A stretch of 64,000 bases of DNA from Trichosphaerium sp. ATCC 40318 (GCA_038496445.1 JALMLS010000420.1:708880-772879); one strand, 5' to 3'. Positions 1,046 through 40,692 are shown, counted from the stretch's first letter. Numbers and translations: made by a program. Notes: a model not told the origin generated them from the sequence alone.

Positions 1046-2402
1046 ATGATGCAGTATATGCTTATAATAGCGTTGGCATTGTGTATAGGCAAAACAATGG
1101 CGTCATGTTCCGAATTTGCGCATTGCAAGTCGTGCGCCAACGCCTCTTCGTGGATTAGCAACTGTAGGTGGTGTCCTAAGGACCAACGTTGTCACGCTTA
1201 CGGCTCCCTTTTGAACACTTGTTCAGAAGATGAAAATATCAAAAACCCGATGTACTGCCCGCCAGGTACGACACCACGTGCTCGATTTATCTTCATGATC
1301 TTCACAATCTTTTTTCGGTTTTTTTTTTTTTTCAACACGAAAATCACTAATATAGTCGCATTTGACTTGCTTTGCAGCTTACTCAGCTCTTCTAGTAAAC
1401 AAGCAAACTGATTTTGATCTCAATATGGCGTATGCTATGCTTGGGTACAGCAATGCCACAAAAGCTGAAGATCCAGCGTTAGCAATACCCAAAACAGCGA
1501 CGCTTCTAGGGAAATGGCTCTTTCCCGCAATAAATACTTCAACATTCGGCTTCATGGCCAAGGACGATAGTCAAAGTCAGATTATACTTGCGTTCCGCGG
1601 TACAGTCGAAATTAAACAACTAATGGAAGAAGTTCTTAACTCTGAAGGCGTACCATACCCTGGTGCTCCATGTACACTAAAAAAAAACCACTTCGATTTG
1701 AGTACTAATTTTTCATTAGCTTTGACAATTCTCAAGTATTTCTATGCTGCTTGGTTTCCATTTGTACAACCAATGAATACCATACTGAAAGAACAGCTAC
1801 AAAAACATTCTAACTATACCGTGCTCGTAACCGGCCACTCACTTGGCGCCGCTATTGCATCGCTAATGGCTTTCGAAATAGCCAGAGCGAAGATTGCAAC
1901 TCCTGTGTTGTACACTTTCGGACAACCTAGAACAGGTAGCATGGAATACGCCGATGCTCATAACAAAGCTGTACCGCAGTCATATAGGGTGGTAAACAAC
2001 AGAGATCCTGTACCACATTTGAATTTGTGCGTACCAAGCGCAACGGAAAAAAAGTGTAAATTTACACTCACTTCATGGAGCCCTTGGTACGAGACTTACC
2101 TCCAAACTTTATCCTTTTTACGTTATGTTAGGCATCACGGGACTGAGATGTTCTTTGGCGCAGGAGAATATAAAAATCAAGTCATGTGTGGATATAGAGA
2201 GTGTACACGACAACCCTTTGGAGAAGACCATTCTTGTGCTGATGGTTTTATAAACTTACCTACTGCCATATTCGCTCCTGGAGTTAGTAAATTAAAACGG
2301 ATAGTTCTTATTTCTGTATGGGCTGTAGAGCTTGTTGAACAACATACAATAGAATACTGGAAAGCACTGTCAGATGGATATTGCGGAGTCAACGCACAAT
2401 AA
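1046..2402 (+). CDS. Secreted class 3 lipase with N-terminal Cys-rich PSI-like domain (about 4 introns)
   Basis: Signal peptide; CxxCxxC...CRWC...CH module; AFRGT, GHSLG (catalytic Ser), TFGQPRTG, RVVNNRDPVPH, HHGTE and C-terminal His. Short in-frame GT-AG introns lie inside ORF 1362-2402. Confidence 0.9.
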
Positions 2403-5021: not shown

Positions 5022-7109
5022 ATGCGCACCTCAACACTATTGTACAACGCTCCACGTTTTTTACCATGTAACACCATTTTAGGTTGTGCTTGGTGTTGTT
5101 TTTCGCAATCGCCGCATGTGGCAGGCTCCAATACTATGGTATGTTGCTATACTACGCATTTTCATGTTGTTCTGACTTATTGTAGGGGTAAACTACGCTG
5201 GAGCTGGTAATATTTTTTCGCCGTTTTATCACGTGTGATAACGAACTAAATCGCTTTAGAATTCGGCCATGGTTCTTTCTGGCCTAGAGCAAGTACTGTA
5301 GACTATTTTAGGAGCAAGGTACTGTTGACACAAGCCTCAATAGGGCCACGCTTACATAAGCCATTAACGCTAATGTCTGTTAGCAATTATGCACTTTCCG
5401 TCTTCCTTTCTTGTGGCAACGGCTTCAACAACCAAGTGATTTCAGCGTAAGATTTGGAGAATCAGGTTATTGGAACTCGTTACAATCTGCTGTAACGATG
5501 ATAACAAACAAAGGATCATATGTAATCATTGATCCTCATAACTAGTACGTAGCAGTCTTTTTTTCGTTTTTTTTGTGTGCACTGTTTTTTTTACTGTAGT
5601 TCATGCGTTGTATTAATTTCGCGCTAGCGCTCGTTACACCTCCAACAAAAATTGTGAGGGTCCTTGGTGTGGTAGTGTTCTTGGTTCCGGTCAAGCATCT
5701 GCCGACGATTTTATTGGAATGTGGAGACTCTTTGCTGATAAGTACAAGAATAACGGCAGAGTAATCTTTGTACGTACAGATTGAGACCTGTGTACTATCT
5801 TCGCTTACCTGTACTACAGGGCCTGATGAATGAACCTCACGACTTGGGTGGTCTTGGTACCCGGGGTTGGAGAGATATTGCTCAGAGAACAATAAACGCA
5901 ATCAGACAAAGAGGTGAGTAATCATGTTCTCTGTTATGTTACAATATTAACTCTTCGAAGGCGCTAACAATCTCATACTTGTTCCTGGTAATCACTGGAC
6001 TGGCGCTCACTCTTGGATCAGCAGCGAGTGCGTTGAATATTACTCTAAGATAAGCGTACTGACGATCATACAATAGCAATGACAATAACTTTGGAAGTAT
6101 TACTGATCCTGCAAATAACTTCGCAATTGAAGTTCATAACTACTTTGACGGTGACCACTCTGGTACTTCTTCAGGATGCTCTTGTACGATTGATGATTTT
6201 ACTACCCTCAGACTTATCCATACTATAGCGAATTGCGCAAGCCAATTGAGCTCCTTTACAACCTGGGCAAGAAACAGAGGTTACAAAGCTTTCTTGGCCG
6301 AATTTGGCGGTGGAAGAAACAGTGGTTGCTCAACATGTATCAGACAAGTTCTTGAGTACGTAATTTGTGTTTGTTTTTAGACTTCTATCGCCAAAACTAA
6401 ATGTTGCTGCAGCCATATGGAATCGAACAGCAATGTTTGGATCGGTTGGACTTGGTGGGCAGCAGGAGAAGAATGGCAAGATGACTACCTATTCAACTTA
6501 CAACCTGTAAATGGAGACAGACAACAACTACCTTGGTTGACACGTGTCGCTTCATGCAGCGGTGGTAGCGGTGGTAAGTACTACATTTTTCTTCATAGCC
6601 TTTTCTAACTTTTATTAGGTCCACCACCTCCTCCTCCTCCTCCTCCTCCTCCACCACCACCTCCTCCACCACCATCGAGTGGTACTTTCACACTTCGTAA
6701 AGGGAACGGTCAGAGTCATGCCCTTGACGCTGGTCCAAATAATGTCAACAATGAGAACGTTAAACTGTGGAGGCACAATATTTACAACCCTTACCAGCAG
6801 TTTGTTGAAATAAATCGTGGAGGCGGTTTTTACTCATACAGAAAGATGAACACAAACTTTTGTTTGGATGGTGGCAATGGCGGTAGAAACGGACAAAACG
6901 TCAAAGTGTACAATTGCAACAGTGGAAACCGAAACCAACACTGGCAAAAAATCAACGTTGGAGGCGGAAAATTCAGACTTCAGAAGCGTAACTCTCCTGG
7001 ATTCTCTATTGATGGAGGTACTGGTGTTTCTAATAACCAGAATGTTAAATTATGGGCATCTAGTAACTCTAATGGAAACCAACAATGGGTGTTCACAAGT
7101 GTTCCTTAA
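5022..7109 (+). CDS. Secreted GH5 endoglucanase (GH5_5-like) + 18-Pro linker + ricin-type beta-trefoil (CBM13); about 11 introns
   Basis: Spliced product has GVNYAGAEFG, FRLPFLWQRL, IIDPHNYARY, GLMNEPHD (acid/base), GNHWTGAHSW, EVHNYFD, FLAEFG (nucleophile) and WIGWTWWAAG, then QxW-type repeats (YQQF, NQHW, NQQW). Confidence 0.93.
6621..6674 (+). repeat. CCA/CCT trinucleotide run encoding 18 consecutive prolines (interdomain linker)
   Basis: Read directly from the sequence at the start of the last GH5 exon. Confidence 0.9.
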
Positions 7110-7429
7110 AAACAAAATAAATTCAACCATTTGCAACAATACAATTCCGCTTATACAATTATCTTGTTCTACTTGTCCTATAACTTATACTTTATAAACA
7201 AAGGATTGTGGGGTTTTTTGTAGTCTGTGGTTTGGTCAATGTTGTCAAACTGGCTTCTTGTTTATTTCCTACTTGTTCAAAATCGTAAAATGGTTCACGT
7301 GGCAAATTATTTGGGTATTTTTTTTTGGAACAAGTCGAAATTTGACCATACTAAATAAACTAAATCAAGCTTGTGGCCACAATGTGCAGCTTACCCAAAG
7401 TCGCTCGAACTTTTGGCCGTGTTCACCCT

Positions 7430-8642
7430 ATGGCGGAAAAACTAAAGTACATGTGTGGCACATGGCAAGGGGACGGCTCTGGTGCGTATTTAGCGGTAAT
7501 TTAGCGTTTATAAGTGTATTGTAGGGTTTTATCCAACGATTAAACCGTTTACTTACAGCGAAACGACAAAGTACGTGCGTTTACTTCAGTAACGTTACTT
7601 ACAGCGACAGAATAGATAGTGTGCCGTCTAAACCAATTTTGACTTACAATCAAGTAACGCGCAATAAGAAAGGTACACCTATCCCCAGCGACAAGTACTG
7701 GAGCGTAATTAGTCGAAATAATCATTCTTAAATCCTGTATTTTTAAAACAGCGTCAGGGGAGATAGCACATTGCGAATCAGGGTTTATTAGGATAGTAGA
7801 AGAGCTGGACGATGATAACCATGGCGTTAAAGCCGAATTAGTACTTGCAGATAATACAGGTTTGTTGAAAAGTAACAAACTGACTGAAGACGCTAATATG
7901 CCAATACAGGGTATACTTCCATATACTCAGGTACTTCTAAGCGTACAGACACTGGTTATAAATCATTTTGGTCGACCGTTAACGTGTCAAAACCGCCATC
8001 AAACAAGAAATATGTCAGGTAGTTCATGTCACCCTTAACAAGAATTAACCATGTGTATCAGGCAACTGACTCGTGAGTTACTTTTCAACGACAACCAACT
8101 GAACTACACAATGCGGATGGCCACAGACCAAGTACGCTATAGAGCGTAGAAAAGAACTCACTGCTTACTTCTTAGGTTACTCTGCAAGATCACCTCACAG
8201 CGACTCTTCAGCTACAAGAAAGTGATAAATCGCTATACAAAGAAGTCACAGTACAAGAAACAGAGCAAAACCAGGTAATCATTTGCAATACCTTTCGCCT
8301 ACTTACCGAAATGTTAAAGGCAGACTACGCAGTAATAGACGTAAGGGAGCCAGATGAGTTGGAGAGCTCTGGAGAAATGCCTCACGCAGCAAATTTACCT
8401 CTAGGATATGTTCTCGGTCCTAACGGAAGAAAGGATGCTTACATTCAGAACTTACCCAAACATAGACCCGTGCTTGTTGTTTGTCGTGCTGGTATAAGAG
8501 CCAGACTAGCTGCAGAACAAATAGCTGGGGTACGTGTAGTTGATATAAAAAGACGTTTAATTGTCTGTAATAGTGGGGATTTGGTAATGTAGATGTTCTC
8601 AAAGGAGGTTACATTGCGTGGAAGAAGCATCAAAAGAGATAA
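7430..8642 (+). CDS. Nitrobindin (THAP4-like heme beta-barrel, DUF1794) fused to a rhodanese domain; 8 introns, about 275 aa
   Basis: Spliced: MAEKLKYMCGTWQGDGSGFYPTIKPFTYSE...KPILTYNQ...AHCESGFIR...LNYTMRMATDQVTLQDHLTATL, then VIDVREPDE...HAANLPL...VVCRAGIRA...VLKGGYIAW. Confidence 0.88.
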
Positions 8643-8836
8643 TCTCTCGCGAATGTCTTGGCAATCACTGCAATTAGATATACATTATAATCATAAACGG
8701 CAATACATTCAATACGTCACATGGCGCTCAGAAAGGAAAAAAAAGACAAATCTTGACCGCTGTTTTTTTTTCAATAGCGCGGAACCTTACAATTGTACAA
8801 ATAATACATCGTCTACGCGCGTAGTACAGTTTATCT

Positions 8837-10045
8837 ATGCTTTCGGAATTAATACTCCTTTGTTGTATCACGTCATTCTCTATCTTTTCGTGTTGTATGG
8901 TACAGTCTTTAAACAACCCTTTTTTTGATGTTTTGCATTTTATGGATGTTTTACAGTTTTTTTCAGAATTGGAGTGTTTGTCGAATAATCACGTGGTTTT
9001 ATAGGCATGCGATGTACCGAATAACATTGAAACACATTGTGCAGATGGTAGAAGTGTATTTGATTGTCCTGTAGGTAGTAGAATAGATTTACGAGGAACT
9101 AAACTATCTGTAACGTCTACAAGTGCGTAAAAGGAAAAAACGGTAAAAATCACGTGATTAATTTCTTTTTAACTAGCGGATATGCCTGATGCGTTTCTCC
9201 GTGATGAACAGATATGGATAGATGATACCAGTAGTATACGTTTCACTTACTGTCCAGTGTGGGAATCAATATTTGTAATTTACTTTGGGCCTGTACATAA
9301 TCAAGATCACATTACACTTTTTAGTGTCCCAGACAATTGCACTATCAGCAGCGACGGCCTTAATGTTATGATGATTAATGATGATGAAATAGGTGGTTGT
9401 AGTATCGGCTGTTCTGTTGCTAGTACGTATATCACTGTTTGTTTCGATCAGTTCGTCCAACATGTTAATTTCTGCTTAGGTTCTAATATCGCTAGTGGTT
9501 TTTTTGACTTTGAAAATGATGATTGCAATAAACACAACTTACTCGCAAGGATATTACCTACAGTTATCATAATAGTTGCTTTAATAGCACTAATAACATG
9601 TATAATTGTTTCTTGTTGTGTTAAATCTATAAGAAGACGAGTACGGAGACTTGTGTCTTTAAGTTTTTTGTTGAAGTAAAAAACTAACAAAATAAATCAG
9701 ATTTTCTCGTATGAAGATGACAAGCAACCGGACTCTGACAAAGGTTATTACCCTAGCAATACTCCATTTTCTAAGCAACTATAGATTCTGAAGATCCACC
9801 AGTCTCAGAGTATTCCGAAAGCGAAGACGAGCCGACACCTGCTGTTTCTTTGGTAATCTTTTTTTGTGTTTATTTTATAAACTTCTTAATTACTTTTATA
9901 GAACCCTCTGCAGATTGCCTTGGCATCTGAACTGAAAGAAAAAACAAAAACGATAGAATTAGGTACAATGAAAGACGCTGAGAAGAGCGTGGAATCAAAA
10001 GACGAAGAGAACACAAGTGTTGAAACTGTTAGCCAAACATTGTAA
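8837..10045 (+). CDS. Type I membrane protein with Cys-containing ectodomain and acidic cytosolic tail
   Basis: Signal-like MLSELILLCCITSFSIFSCCM, TM ILPTVIIIVALIALITCIIVSCCV followed by basic KSIRRR, acidic exons to TAA at 10043-10045. Confidence 0.6.
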
Positions 10046-10491: not shown

Positions 10492-11611
10492 TTAATTCTT
10501 TATTTTTTGTTGTTTTTTTTGTCGTTTTTTTTCGCATTTAAGTGCGTATTGCTTCATTTTCTTTGAAATTTTCTTTGTGTCCTTCGCATTAGCCCAATTT
10601 CTCTTTACAGTTTTTTTGAATTCTTTTGTAGATAGAGCGTTTTTTGTGATAAATGGATGTTTCAGCAACTCTGTAATGTATGATTGATTCTCATGGCTCA
10701 AGCATTGTTCAACAAAAGAGGTGAAGTCCTTATCAAAACCCCAAATGTTACGAAATGTAATCTCAGTTTGCTTTGTAACATAAAAACTTTCGCAGAAAGA
10801 GTCATCGTGAGGTTCCACTGAGGCCATTTCGCCAACTCCAAGTTGCATGGCCATCACGCCAATGGCGTAAATGTCTGTTGATCTGCTATATCCATACAGC
10901 TGGGCATGTGGTGACACAAAACCAGATGTACCAATAAATTGTTTTGTCCTGTTTGATTTTTCTTTGGCGAGTCCAAAATCAGCCAACTGAGGAATAAAGT
11001 CTTTAGTGATCAAAATATTCTCCGCTTTTATATCTCCGTGAGTAATCCCAGATTTATGAAGCTCAAAAGCTGCTTCGAGAGTTGCTTTTACTATTGTAGC
11101 AACCTCATTAATATCTTTAAAGTGACTTAGTTCGGTGGCATCGCAGAGTGCCCTTTGCATGACCAATGAAGCACCGTCATCTTTCTCAATATAACCAACT
11201 GCCGCCATAATATTCTCTGAAGGAACAGCTCGAGATAATGTATACTCATTTTTCTAACAAAAACAGTTAGAACAATAATAAATAAACGTGGAAAAAAAAC
11301 GAAAAATTTTTACACAAAAAGAAAGCCAACAAGTTGACTTAGTGAAAAAAAAAAAATGCTGAAAGCTAAAGACGTACCAGGGTTTCAGTCAGGGCTTCGA
11401 TCTTTTCGTCGCTTTCATCAGTTTTGTTAACGACTTTGATAGCAAGCTTCTCGCCTGTTTTTCTATCTTTGGCCTTGAACACAGTGCCGCAACCGCCAGT
11501 TCCAAGAGGAATAGTAGACGTAACTTTAATGCCAGTTTTCTGAGTCCTGCCGGTAATGCCGTAGAAGAATGATCGTGCACATCTGGAAATCGATTGGATA
11601 AATTGGGCCAT
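10492..11611 (-). CDS. Ser/Thr protein kinase (STE-like), one intron
   Basis: GTGGCGTV, LAIK, HGDIKAEN, LADFG, GTSGFVSPH (APE variant), DIYAIG; exons joined ETL|KNEY. Confidence 0.9.
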
Positions 11612-39459: not shown

Positions 39460-40692
39460 ATGGAGAGTTTAGACAAAATCAATTCAGTGTTTGCTGAAAT
39501 GCCTGTAGAGGTCATTATTTACATTCTGCAGTTAGTGTCTGTACTATCTATGCACTCAGTGGTTCATACATGTACATTATTTGCAAATATTGCTAGAAAG
39601 TACTTGGAATACACAAACAGGAGAGAAATTGTAATTAAAACAAAAAAGCAGCTTAAAAAACTGTTTGCAACACTCCCTCATCTAATCAAATCAAACAAGA
39701 TTATTCTCAAGTTCCCGATAAAACAAAAACACTTAGATTACCTACAAGGTGCATATTCAGTGCGACTTTACAAGAAATTTGGCAAGGATCTGGACTTTAC
39801 AAGCTTTAACATTGAGCATGGTTTGTATTTGGGAGGTTGTACGTCAGTGACTGATGCTCATCTTAAACAACTATCTGGAATCCACAAAGTATCGCTATGC
39901 AACACAGATGTGACTGATGATGGTGTTAAAGCACTAGCTGGCATTCATGCTATAAATTTAAATCGGTGTTCTCGCATCACAGATGATAGTGTTAAAGCAC
40001 TTGCTGGTGTTCATTCTATTGAATTATGTTGGTGTACACGTATTACAAATGATGGCATCAAAGCACTGGCTGGCGTTTACAAGATATGTCTAGATCATTG
40101 TAGTAATGTGACAGATGAAGGTATTAAAGCATTAGCTGGCGTTCATACAATCAAGCTTTATAACACAAATGTTACAGATGAAGGAATTAAGGCGTTGGCT
40201 GGTGTTCATACTATTAATTTAGGGTGTTGTCACGTGACAGATGAAGGTATTAAAGAACTCAAAGGTGTCTACGATATAATTCTATTCAACACAGCTATTT
40301 CAGATAAAGGTCTTAAAACTCTGAAAGGTGTTCATAGGATACATTTAGGCAATTGTAGCATTGGAGATACAGGGATCAAAGCCTTAGCTGGCGTTCATAC
40401 TATCAGTCTTTATAACACATCTGTGACAGATGAAGGTCTTAGAGCATTAAAAGATGTTCATGTAATTGATTTAGGCCATTGCAATCACGTGACAGATGAG
40501 GGTGTGAAGCATATTGCTAGCGCTAATACAATTAATCTCATAGGCACAAGCGTGACAGACAAAGGAGTTAACGCTATTAAACGTCTCAAATCATTGGCTG
40601 GTGTGCAATCTGTTAGTCTTTCAAAACCAAACAGTGAACATAAAACTAACACCTTAGATATTCACACTATTTATCATCAACAAGCACACTAG
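39460..40692 (+). CDS. F-box/LRR protein with about 13 AGVH-type LRRs, intronless CDS
   Basis: F-box FAEMPVEVIIYILQLV...VHTCTLF; repeats ALAGVHTIxLxxxxVTDEGIK. Confidence 0.92.
   Translation: MESLDKINSVFAEMPVEVIIYILQLVSVLSMHSVVHTCTLFANIARKYLEYTNRREIVIKTKKQLKKLFATLPHLIKSNKIILKFPIKQKHLDYLQGAYSVRLYKKFGKDLDFTSFNIEHGLYLGGCTSVTDAHLKQLSGIHKVSLCNTDVTDDGVKALAGIHAINLNRCSRITDDSVKALAGVHSIELCWCTRITNDGIKALAGVYKICLDHCSNVTDEGIKALAGVHTIKLYNTNVTDEGIKALAGVHTINLGCCHVTDEGIKELKGVYDIILFNTAISDKGLKTLKGVHRIHLGNCSIGDTGIKALAGVHTISLYNTSVTDEGLRALKDVHVIDLGHCNHVTDEGVKHIASANTINLIGTSVTDKGVNAIKRLKSLAGVQSVSLSKPNSEHKTNTLDIHTIYHQQAH

Follow-up and report, generated by a model that had tools for sequence, protein, structure and literature searches.

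A 64,000-nucleotide stretch of the Trichosphaerium sp. ATCC 40318 assembly (GCA_038496445.1, JALMLS010000420.1:708880-772879; hereafter the window) contains, at positions 7382 to 8642, a gene for a protein that joins a nitrobindin domain to a rhodanese domain. An earlier inspection of the bare DNA (the sequence-only reading) had proposed a fusion of this kind at 7430-8642. Translation of positions 7000-9200 in three frames showed protein-like segments that switch frames at GT...AG boundaries, and a nine-exon splice model for the plus strand was built from the sequence and then tested against public RNA contigs. Six public runs with near-identical sequence were found, and four of them (X1-X4) were aligned to the locus. 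The organism is eukaryotic; its introns are about 45 nt long and its GC content is 37%. The only sense-frame open reading frame (ORF) of at least 60 aa is 8311-8592, so that, as had been remarked earlier, an ORF track displays the rhodanese part alone. The features of the gene are as follows.

7362-7381, plus strand: transcription start and 20-nt 5' untranslated region (UTR), from the contig starts of X3 and X4 and a template-switch tail

7382-7481, plus strand: exon 1, coding sequence (CDS) from ATG 7382, with the N-terminal tail MCSLPKVARTFGR, Cys2 at 7385-7387 and the nitrobindin start GTWQGDGSG

7525-7570, plus strand: exon 2, FYPTIKPFTYSETT, with the Phe equivalent to Phe44 of the Arabidopsis nitrobindin At1g79260 (At-Nb) at 7548-7550; RNA joints 7481/7525 and 7570/7611

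7611-7672, plus strand: exon 3, KIDSVPSKPILTYNQVTRNKK, from RNA-contig joints

7758-7859, plus strand: exon 4, with His74 at 7769-7771, Cys75 at 7772-7774, the insertion ELDDDNHG and Thr103 (equivalent to Thr98), from RNA and profile alignments

7910-8018, plus strand: exon 5, barrel strands, from RNA-contig joints

8062-8131, plus strand: exon 6, barrel strands, with Met159 (equivalent to Met148) at 8117-8119, from RNA-contig joints

8176-8274, plus strand: exon 7, the junction exon, with the last barrel strand, His169 at 8191-8193, some 15 linker residues and the rhodanese start, without a stop

8320-8529, plus strand: exon 8, rhodanese core, with the loop C251-R-A-G-I-R256, its Cys at 8482-8484, and the match to Pfam PF00581

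8574-8642, plus strand: exon 9, last rhodanese strand and helix, WGFGNVDVLKGGYIAWKK, with the stop TAA at 8640-8642

8643-8800, plus strand: 3' UTR; RNA contigs continue beyond 8800, with the end not mapped

The splice model agreed closely with the RNA. An X3 contig (record 4; 1344 nt, depth 37) starts at 7362, extends beyond 8800 and lacks exactly eight GT..AG intervals, the number of introns that had been called from the sequence. It aligns in the blocks 7362-7480, 7611-7670, 7756-7852, 7903-8014, 8058-8131, 8176-8272, 8318-8528 and 8573-8800; exon 2 corresponds to its letters 120-166 and is placed at 7524-7570 by record 5 of X4. The introns are 7482-7524, 7571-7610, 7673-7757, 7860-7909, 8019-8061, 8132-8175, 8275-8319 and 8530-8573, and all eight are bounded by GT..AG. 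Seven of the eight joints were confirmed by X4 (the exception being 7673-7757) and the last joint by X1 and X2; joint 8529/8574 is present in all four runs. One splice acceptor as first placed proved slightly off: the RNA ends the 85-nt intron 3 at the AG at 7756-7757, six bases downstream of 7751, to give the reading ...NKK-G-EIAHCESGF. The RNA contigs differ from the genome at two listed CDS positions, 7818 (A>G, resulting in N90S within the loop insertion ELDDDNHG) and 7959 (T>C, silent). They thus derive from another allele or another strain, which gives them some independence from the assembly.

The contigs of X3 and X4 both begin at 7362, and the X4 contig carries a template-switch oligo tail, GTATCAACGCAGAGTACGGGG, directly before this position. 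The 5' end of the transcript is therefore 7362 and the first ATG is 7382, which has an A at -3 and is in frame with the ATG at 7430. The product begins MCSLPK and is 288 aa long from 7382; it would be 272 aa if translated from 7430. The earlier proposal of a product of about 275 aa from 7430 was therefore right in frame and slightly off in its start codon.

The junction between the two domains lies inside a single exon. Exon 7 encodes ...VTLQDHLTATLQ, which is the last barrel strand with the putative haem-ligand histidine, then a short linker, and then KEVTVQETEQNQ, where the match to the rhodanese profile begins. That this exon holds the end of the barrel and the start of the rhodanese without a stop had been pointed out before, and both the exon and a spliced transcript across the junction are now borne out by RNA contigs that span both domains. 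The frame of position 7372 is open over 8176-8592, and intron 7 (8275-8319, 45 nt) is in frame and free of stops, so that the two domains would stay in one frame even if intron 7 were retained. In that case the rhodanese core would be set off from the linker by 15 additional residues, and the protein would stay unbroken. A native, intron-bearing, transcribed eukaryotic gene encodes both domains in one 288-aa chain.

The chain opens with a tail of about 12 residues that starts with Met-Cys and is predicted to be disordered. A complete nitrobindin domain of the THAP4_heme-bd family (PF08768) follows, joined by some 15 linker residues to a single-domain rhodanese. Pfam found no match on single nitrobindin exons, which encode 23-36 aa each and are too short for it, and locally built profiles were therefore used on the spliced product. 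A nitrobindin profile built from 129 PF08768-only proteins matched residues 14-176 over profile positions 5-159 of 161 (107 bits, E 5e-35). The motifs quoted in the sequence-only reading, namely GTWQGDGSGFYPTI, KPILTYNQ, HCESGFIR, LQDHLTATL and CRAGIR, are all present in the product.

In order to compare haem pockets, residues were mapped by hand onto At-Nb by chaining alignments through the homologue P0011 (see below), and the comparison covered the residues that a published list puts no farther than 4 A from the haem, together with His76, Glu78 and His158 (PMC10135655). The proximal His169, in LQDHL, aligns with the invariant histidine of all fusion members and, through P0011, with His158 of At1g79260 (3emm), as expected from its earlier designation as the haem ligand. 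The distal-side histidine is kept as well (His74, equivalent to His76 of At-Nb). Its position had been identified correctly, but the corresponding residue of At1g79260 is a contact residue rather than a ligand: His76 lies parallel to the haem and touches it, 6.9 A from the iron (PMC10135655). Overall, 8 of 11 pocket positions are identical to At-Nb, both histidines included: F44, H76 (H74), E78, T98, V128, M148, H158 (H169) and L159. Among the others, I131 is conservatively replaced by L, M75 by A and L100 by Y. Given these correspondences, the barrel very probably holds haem b at its open rim with His169 as the ligand, like At1g79260, Rv2717c and THAP4.

The cysteine next to the distal-side histidine, Cys75, had been proposed as a possible relay. 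The equivalent position is Y, T, T, F and T in five relatives. Since it is not conserved, a relay as a feature of the family is unlikely and was rejected; it could at best be specific to the locus protein.

The rhodanese half was recognized directly by Pfam. Exon 8 alone scored 28.0 bits against PF00581 (cut-off 22.2), and 8176-8529 scored 29.5 bits. A profile built locally from 41 single-domain rhodaneses matched residues 176-286 of the spliced protein with 108 bits (8.5e-36). The active-site loop C251-R-A-G-I-R256, which had been described as intact, has the six residues typical of sulfurtransferases, as opposed to the seven residues of the Cdc25 loop, and the pattern C-x-[SA]-G-x-R is invariant in six of six fusion proteins. 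The solved structures nearest to the rhodanese exon of the locus are 5ve3 (BpPRF), 1qxn (the Wolinella polysulfide carrier Sud) and 3nta (a persulfide reductase); these matches are weak (E around 1e-3 with a 70-aa query), but agree with the results for P0011. By analogy with sulfurtransferases, we consider it highly probable that Cys251 forms a persulfide.

The nitrobindin-rhodanese fusion is not confined to Trichosphaerium. A search with 8176-8529 returned mostly ordinary rhodaneses, together with three proteins of 265-300 aa that contain both PF08768 and PF00581, and word-indexed searches added two more. In the representative search with 8176-8529 no near-identical protein was found, and the locus product is absent from that library. 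The five relatives represent five other eukaryotic lineages. P0011 is from soil metagenome or metatranscriptome contigs and adjoins a gene for phosphoribosyl pyrophosphate (PRPP) synthetase, P0123 is from two transcriptome-like Logan contigs, P0124 is from the choanoflagellate Salpingoeca helianthica (EukProt), and P0072 (contig L168) is from a lineage with 56% GC. P0086, the N-terminus of which is cut by the contig end, lies next to a RhoGEF gene, indicating that it is eukaryotic. Pfam PF08768 scored 117 bits on P0011, 83 bits on P0072 and 165 bits on P0086.

The locus protein is 36% identical to P0011 over residues 1-288 (E 1e-49), and its residues 1-284 match a profile of the five other fusions over model positions 1-280 of 282 (209 bits, E 4.8e-66). 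Judged by these scores, the match is far beyond chance for both halves and for the full-length fusion. Both histidines, the rhodanese cysteine and the loop arginine are invariant across the five relatives and kept in the locus protein. In a quick tree with 70 mostly bacterial nitrobindin-only proteins, which contained no stand-alone eukaryotic nitrobindin, the nitrobindin halves of the six fusions formed one split with a support of 0.83. The persistence of the architecture, the domain order and both catalytic residues over six lineages at about 35% identity argues for selection on the combination.

Large-database searches, including one seeded with translations of the locus exons, yielded four fusion clusters and no more, without any orthologue drawn from NCBI, UniRef or nr. 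The ESM Atlas held no cluster of at least 50 members with both domains, and the AlphaFold DB fold clusters held no match covering both (best template modelling (TM) score by query 0.51). A literature search over 8.4 million full texts found no paper that names nitrobindin or DUF1794 together with rhodanese and no description of the fusion, in line with the expectation of the sequence-only reading. By their titles and abstracts, the single paper listed for PF08768 and the ten papers that contain both nitrobindin and sulfide are on other subjects. To our knowledge, THAP4 is the sole described nitrobindin fusion. The architecture is rare and undescribed, but public data contain it, without a name, for five or more further eukaryotic lineages, and it is hence not unique to this genome.

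A structure was predicted with AlphaFold2 (AF2) for P0011, as a stand-in for the locus protein, from an alignment of 114 rows. The model (mean predicted local distance difference test (pLDDT) 88, predicted TM score (pTM) 0.64) has ten strands between residues 28 and 181 and, after them, an alpha/beta domain. Residues below a pLDDT of 50 are only 1-12 and 185-188, and the N-terminal tail has a pLDDT of 40. In a Foldseek comparison with the PDB, the best matches were 2fr2 (Rv2717c, TM 0.91), the At-Nb entries (At1g79260 nitrobindin, TM around 0.89) and 3ia8 (the THAP4 haem domain, TM 0.85). The next matches were the rhodanese domains of 3tp9 and 5ve3, which are persulfide dioxygenase fusions, and of 3ict, 3nta and 8a56, which are CoA-persulfide reductases. 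The linker exits the barrel only seven residues past the putative haem-ligand histidine, which puts the rhodanese tether at the barrel's haem end.

Comparison with known systems places the protein between two groups. With nitrobindins (At1g79260, M. tuberculosis Rv2717c and the C-terminal domain of human THAP4; PF08768) it shares the full-length profile, the proximal and distal-side histidines and most haem contacts; for its homologue P0011, a 10-stranded barrel is predicted. Known nitrobindins stand alone or follow an N-terminal THAP zinc finger, whereas the locus protein has a C-terminal rhodanese of the catalytic type and a Met-Cys tail. It further differs in a loop insertion of about seven residues (ELDDDNHG) after the distal-His strand and in the replacement of M75 by Ala. 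Among solved structures, the rhodanese half comes closest to rhodanese domains fused to persulfide enzymes (the persulfide dioxygenase-rhodanese proteins BpPRF 5ve3 and 3tp9; the CoA-disulfide/persulfide reductase-rhodanese proteins 3icr, 3nta and 8a56), with which it shares the six-residue Cys loop and the logic of a catalytic partner plus a tethered persulfide carrier. In those enzymes the partner is a non-haem-iron dioxygenase or a flavoenzyme; here it is a predicted haem b barrel.

The single-domain sulfurtransferases GlpE (1gmx), TSTD1 (6bev) and yeast RDL2 (6k6r) have the same fold, size and catalytic Cys loop as the rhodanese half, but they stand alone, and the similarity to them is weaker than to the fused rhodaneses. 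In P0073, an uncharacterised protein of 247 aa, a single chain carries a cytochrome c domain along with a rhodanese; its haem domain is of the unrelated c-type. Taken together, the locus product is, as judged from profiles and conserved residues, a true single-chain nitrobindin plus rhodanese. It is expressed, and its function is what we infer below.

A further shared feature lies at the N-terminus. Four of the five members with a complete N-terminus (the locus protein, P0011, P0123 and P0124) start with Met-Cys-Ser-x-Pro, encoded at 7382-7420 in the window, and P0011, P0123 and P0124 have an in-frame stop upstream of this start. Cys2 on the floppy tail might act as an N-terminal-Cys degron, become acylated or accept persulfide as a mobile group, which we regard as a lead and not as a finding. 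The likeness to N-terminal-Cys degron substrates (RGS4/5/16, IL-32 and plant ERF-VII) consists of a Met-Cys start on a disordered tail and a link to nitric oxide (NO), and is one of motif only; unlike in those substrates, Cys2 is absent from one fusion member. In that member, P0072, an Arg/Ala-rich N-terminal extension (MRAAIAAPVPPIVARGTTR...; L168:1-140) replaces MCS and may be an organelle-targeting peptide.

The best-supported mechanism, which we put forward tentatively and at a little short of an even chance, is that the haem and rhodanese sites act jointly on reactive sulfur, with a haem serving alongside a persulfide carrier. The solvent-exposed ferric haem would oxidise or bind HS- or persulfide, perhaps in addition to NO, nitrite or peroxynitrite. 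The Cys of the tethered rhodanese would then take up sulfane sulfur (from thiosulfate or persulfide) or hand it over to a small-molecule or protein acceptor. This scheme would parallel that of rhodanese domains fused to persulfide dioxygenase or CoA-persulfide reductase. It is suggested by the kinship of the rhodanese half, the gene neighbourhoods of bacterial nitrobindins, the properties of H2S-oxidising ferric haemoproteins and the position of the linker at the haem end. The sequence-only reading had suggested that NO/H2S chemistry may be coupled to persulfide transfer, for which the rhodanese kinship and two bacterial neighbourhoods give circumstantial support. Ferric haemoproteins with accessible iron or open distal sites are known to oxidise H2S to thiosulfate and polysulfides (review PMC5486136), and the haem of nitrobindin is stably ferric and solvent-exposed (PMC7915275).

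The neighbourhoods come from 160 prokaryotic nitrobindin loci that were scanned for flanking rhodanese genes. In a metagenome-assembled genome of Nitriliruptoraceae (L070, 2989-5326), and in a matching metagenome contig (L142), the nitrobindin gene is followed by a 42-nt gap, a gene for a 111-aa rhodanese and a gene for a CoADR-like pyridine-nucleotide-disulfide oxidoreductase. In both, the nitrobindin and rhodanese genes share one frame, with one stop codon between them. In another metagenome contig with 66% GC (L102, 641-2532), a gene for a metallo-beta-lactamase-fold domain plus two rhodanese domains, of the persulfide-dioxygenase type, has its stop within a few bases of the nitrobindin start.

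Several observations weigh against joint action on reactive sulfur. The activities published for nitrobindins in vitro are directed at NO, nitrite and peroxynitrite rather than at sulfide (PMC6275384, PMC7763097, PMC10094804, PMC10135655). Rhodanese genes occurred within the flanks of only 3 of the 160 nitrobindin loci (two independent cases), directly adjoining in each. If about 0.25% of actinobacterial genes encode rhodaneses, which is a rough estimate, two independent cases are near chance for whole flanks and only the immediate co-oriented adjacency is mildly unusual; we take it as suggestive and not as statistical support. The moderate pTM of the P0011 model (0.64) and its low-confidence linker mean that neither a domain orientation nor a fixed haem-to-Cys geometry is predicted. 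Finally, the rhodanese halves did not group in a quick tree, in which they stayed unresolved; the domain envelopes were loose and nothing is drawn from it.

The main rival is that the protein detoxifies reactive nitrogen, with the rhodanese as a redox helper. The haem would then catalyze peroxynitrite isomerisation, NO scavenging by reductive nitrosylation and nitrite reduction, and the rhodanese Cys or its persulfide would be a reductant, an antioxidant partner or a trans-nitrosation site. All nitrobindin activities in the four papers just cited are of this NO, nitrite and peroxynitrite type, the nitrobindin half is canonical with both histidines present, and UniRef and NCBI label bacterial relatives 'peroxynitrite isomerase'. 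However, peroxynitrite isomerisation requires no partner domain, characterised enzyme-fused rhodaneses are sulfane-sulfur carriers (5ve3, 3nta, 3icr), and both bacterial neighbourhoods hold persulfide genes and not NO genes. On balance we consider this explanation rather unlikely, while taking it seriously.

It is improbable, in our estimate, that the fusion merely co-localises or co-expresses two housekeeping activities, with a barrel that binds a hydrophobic non-haem ligand and a rhodanese that acts alone. Such independence would fit the moderate inter-domain confidence of AF2 and the floppy linker, the lack of monophyly of the rhodanese halves in the quick tree, and the naming of many relatives as 'FABP family protein' in a family long annotated 'FABP-like'. 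The haem-ligand His and 8 of the 10 other pocket residues are kept, however, and the conservation of architecture, order and both catalytic residues over the six lineages also speaks against two unconnected activities.

The Met-Cys start raises the further idea of a gas- or redox-sensing regulator, in which Cys2, exposed once the Met is removed, would serve as a Cys/Arg N-degron (dependent on O2 and NO), haem ligation and the persulfide state of the rhodanese would set stability or output, and which would report NO, O2 or H2S. The MCS-x-P start recurs in the locus protein, P0011, P0123 and P0124 despite only about 35% identity, the tail of P0011 is predicted to be disordered, and N-terminal Cys degrons respond to O2 and NO (PMC11199558, PMC12403002). 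Against this, the motif is found in four sequences only and the fifth N-complete member, P0072, reads MRAAIAAP..., Cys2 may equally be acylated, acetylated or irrelevant, and the chain contains no partner or output domain. A sensor therefore appears quite improbable. The same low level of credence applies to a more ambitious scheme, a long shot in which the protein would be a self-contained hub where gasotransmitter pathways meet: the nitrobindin haem would oxidise H2S or form mixed S/N species such as thionitrite or nitrosopersulfide out of NO and persulfide, the rhodanese Cys would carry sulfane sulfur, and the N-terminal Cys would set an O2/NO-dependent lifetime.

An artefact, in which two neighbouring genes were joined by read-through, mis-splicing or mis-assembly, is barely conceivable: no support for it was found beyond the fact that the RNA evidence consists of assembled contigs and not single reads, whereas a single exon contains the junction, the joints recur in two to four runs, the co-linear protein is shared by six independent lineages, and the eight spliceosomal introns exclude bacterial contamination.

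An X4 RNA contig (1662 nt) extends about 900 nt past 8800 and may reach the ORF 9182-9679 (plus strand), which encodes 165 aa with a C-terminal membrane anchor; a long 3' UTR could account for the extension, as could genes that overlap or are transcribed together. The upstream neighbour at 6417-7109 (plus strand) contains, by eye, a glycoside-hydrolase-like segment WWAAGEEW..DY, a low-complexity stretch coding for Gly and Glu (about 6490-6690) and a ricin-B/CBM13-like QxW repeat up to 7109. Further away, the ORF 1362-2399 (plus strand) matches class-3 lipase, 10492-11205 (minus strand) a protein kinase domain and 39460-40689 (plus strand) leucine-rich repeats; these are ordinary eukaryotic genes, unrelated to the fusion gene.

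Nitrobindins occur from bacteria to humans, and there are good descriptions of their chemistry in vitro (NO, nitrite, peroxynitrite); their cellular function has been called unknown (PMC6275384). A fusion that occurs naturally has long served as a hint to the functional partner of a domain, and in this case it points to sulfane-sulfur and persulfide chemistry. If the haem and the rhodanese cysteine indeed act jointly on reactive sulfur, the fusion would bring a haem-b barrel into the small group of enzymes that have acquired a rhodanese as persulfide carrier. Should even the improbable hub scheme be true, it would give nitrobindins a first physiological role, in reactive-sulfur metabolism, and eukaryotes a haem-dependent module for sulfide oxidation that is independent of sulfide:quinone oxidoreductase (SQR).

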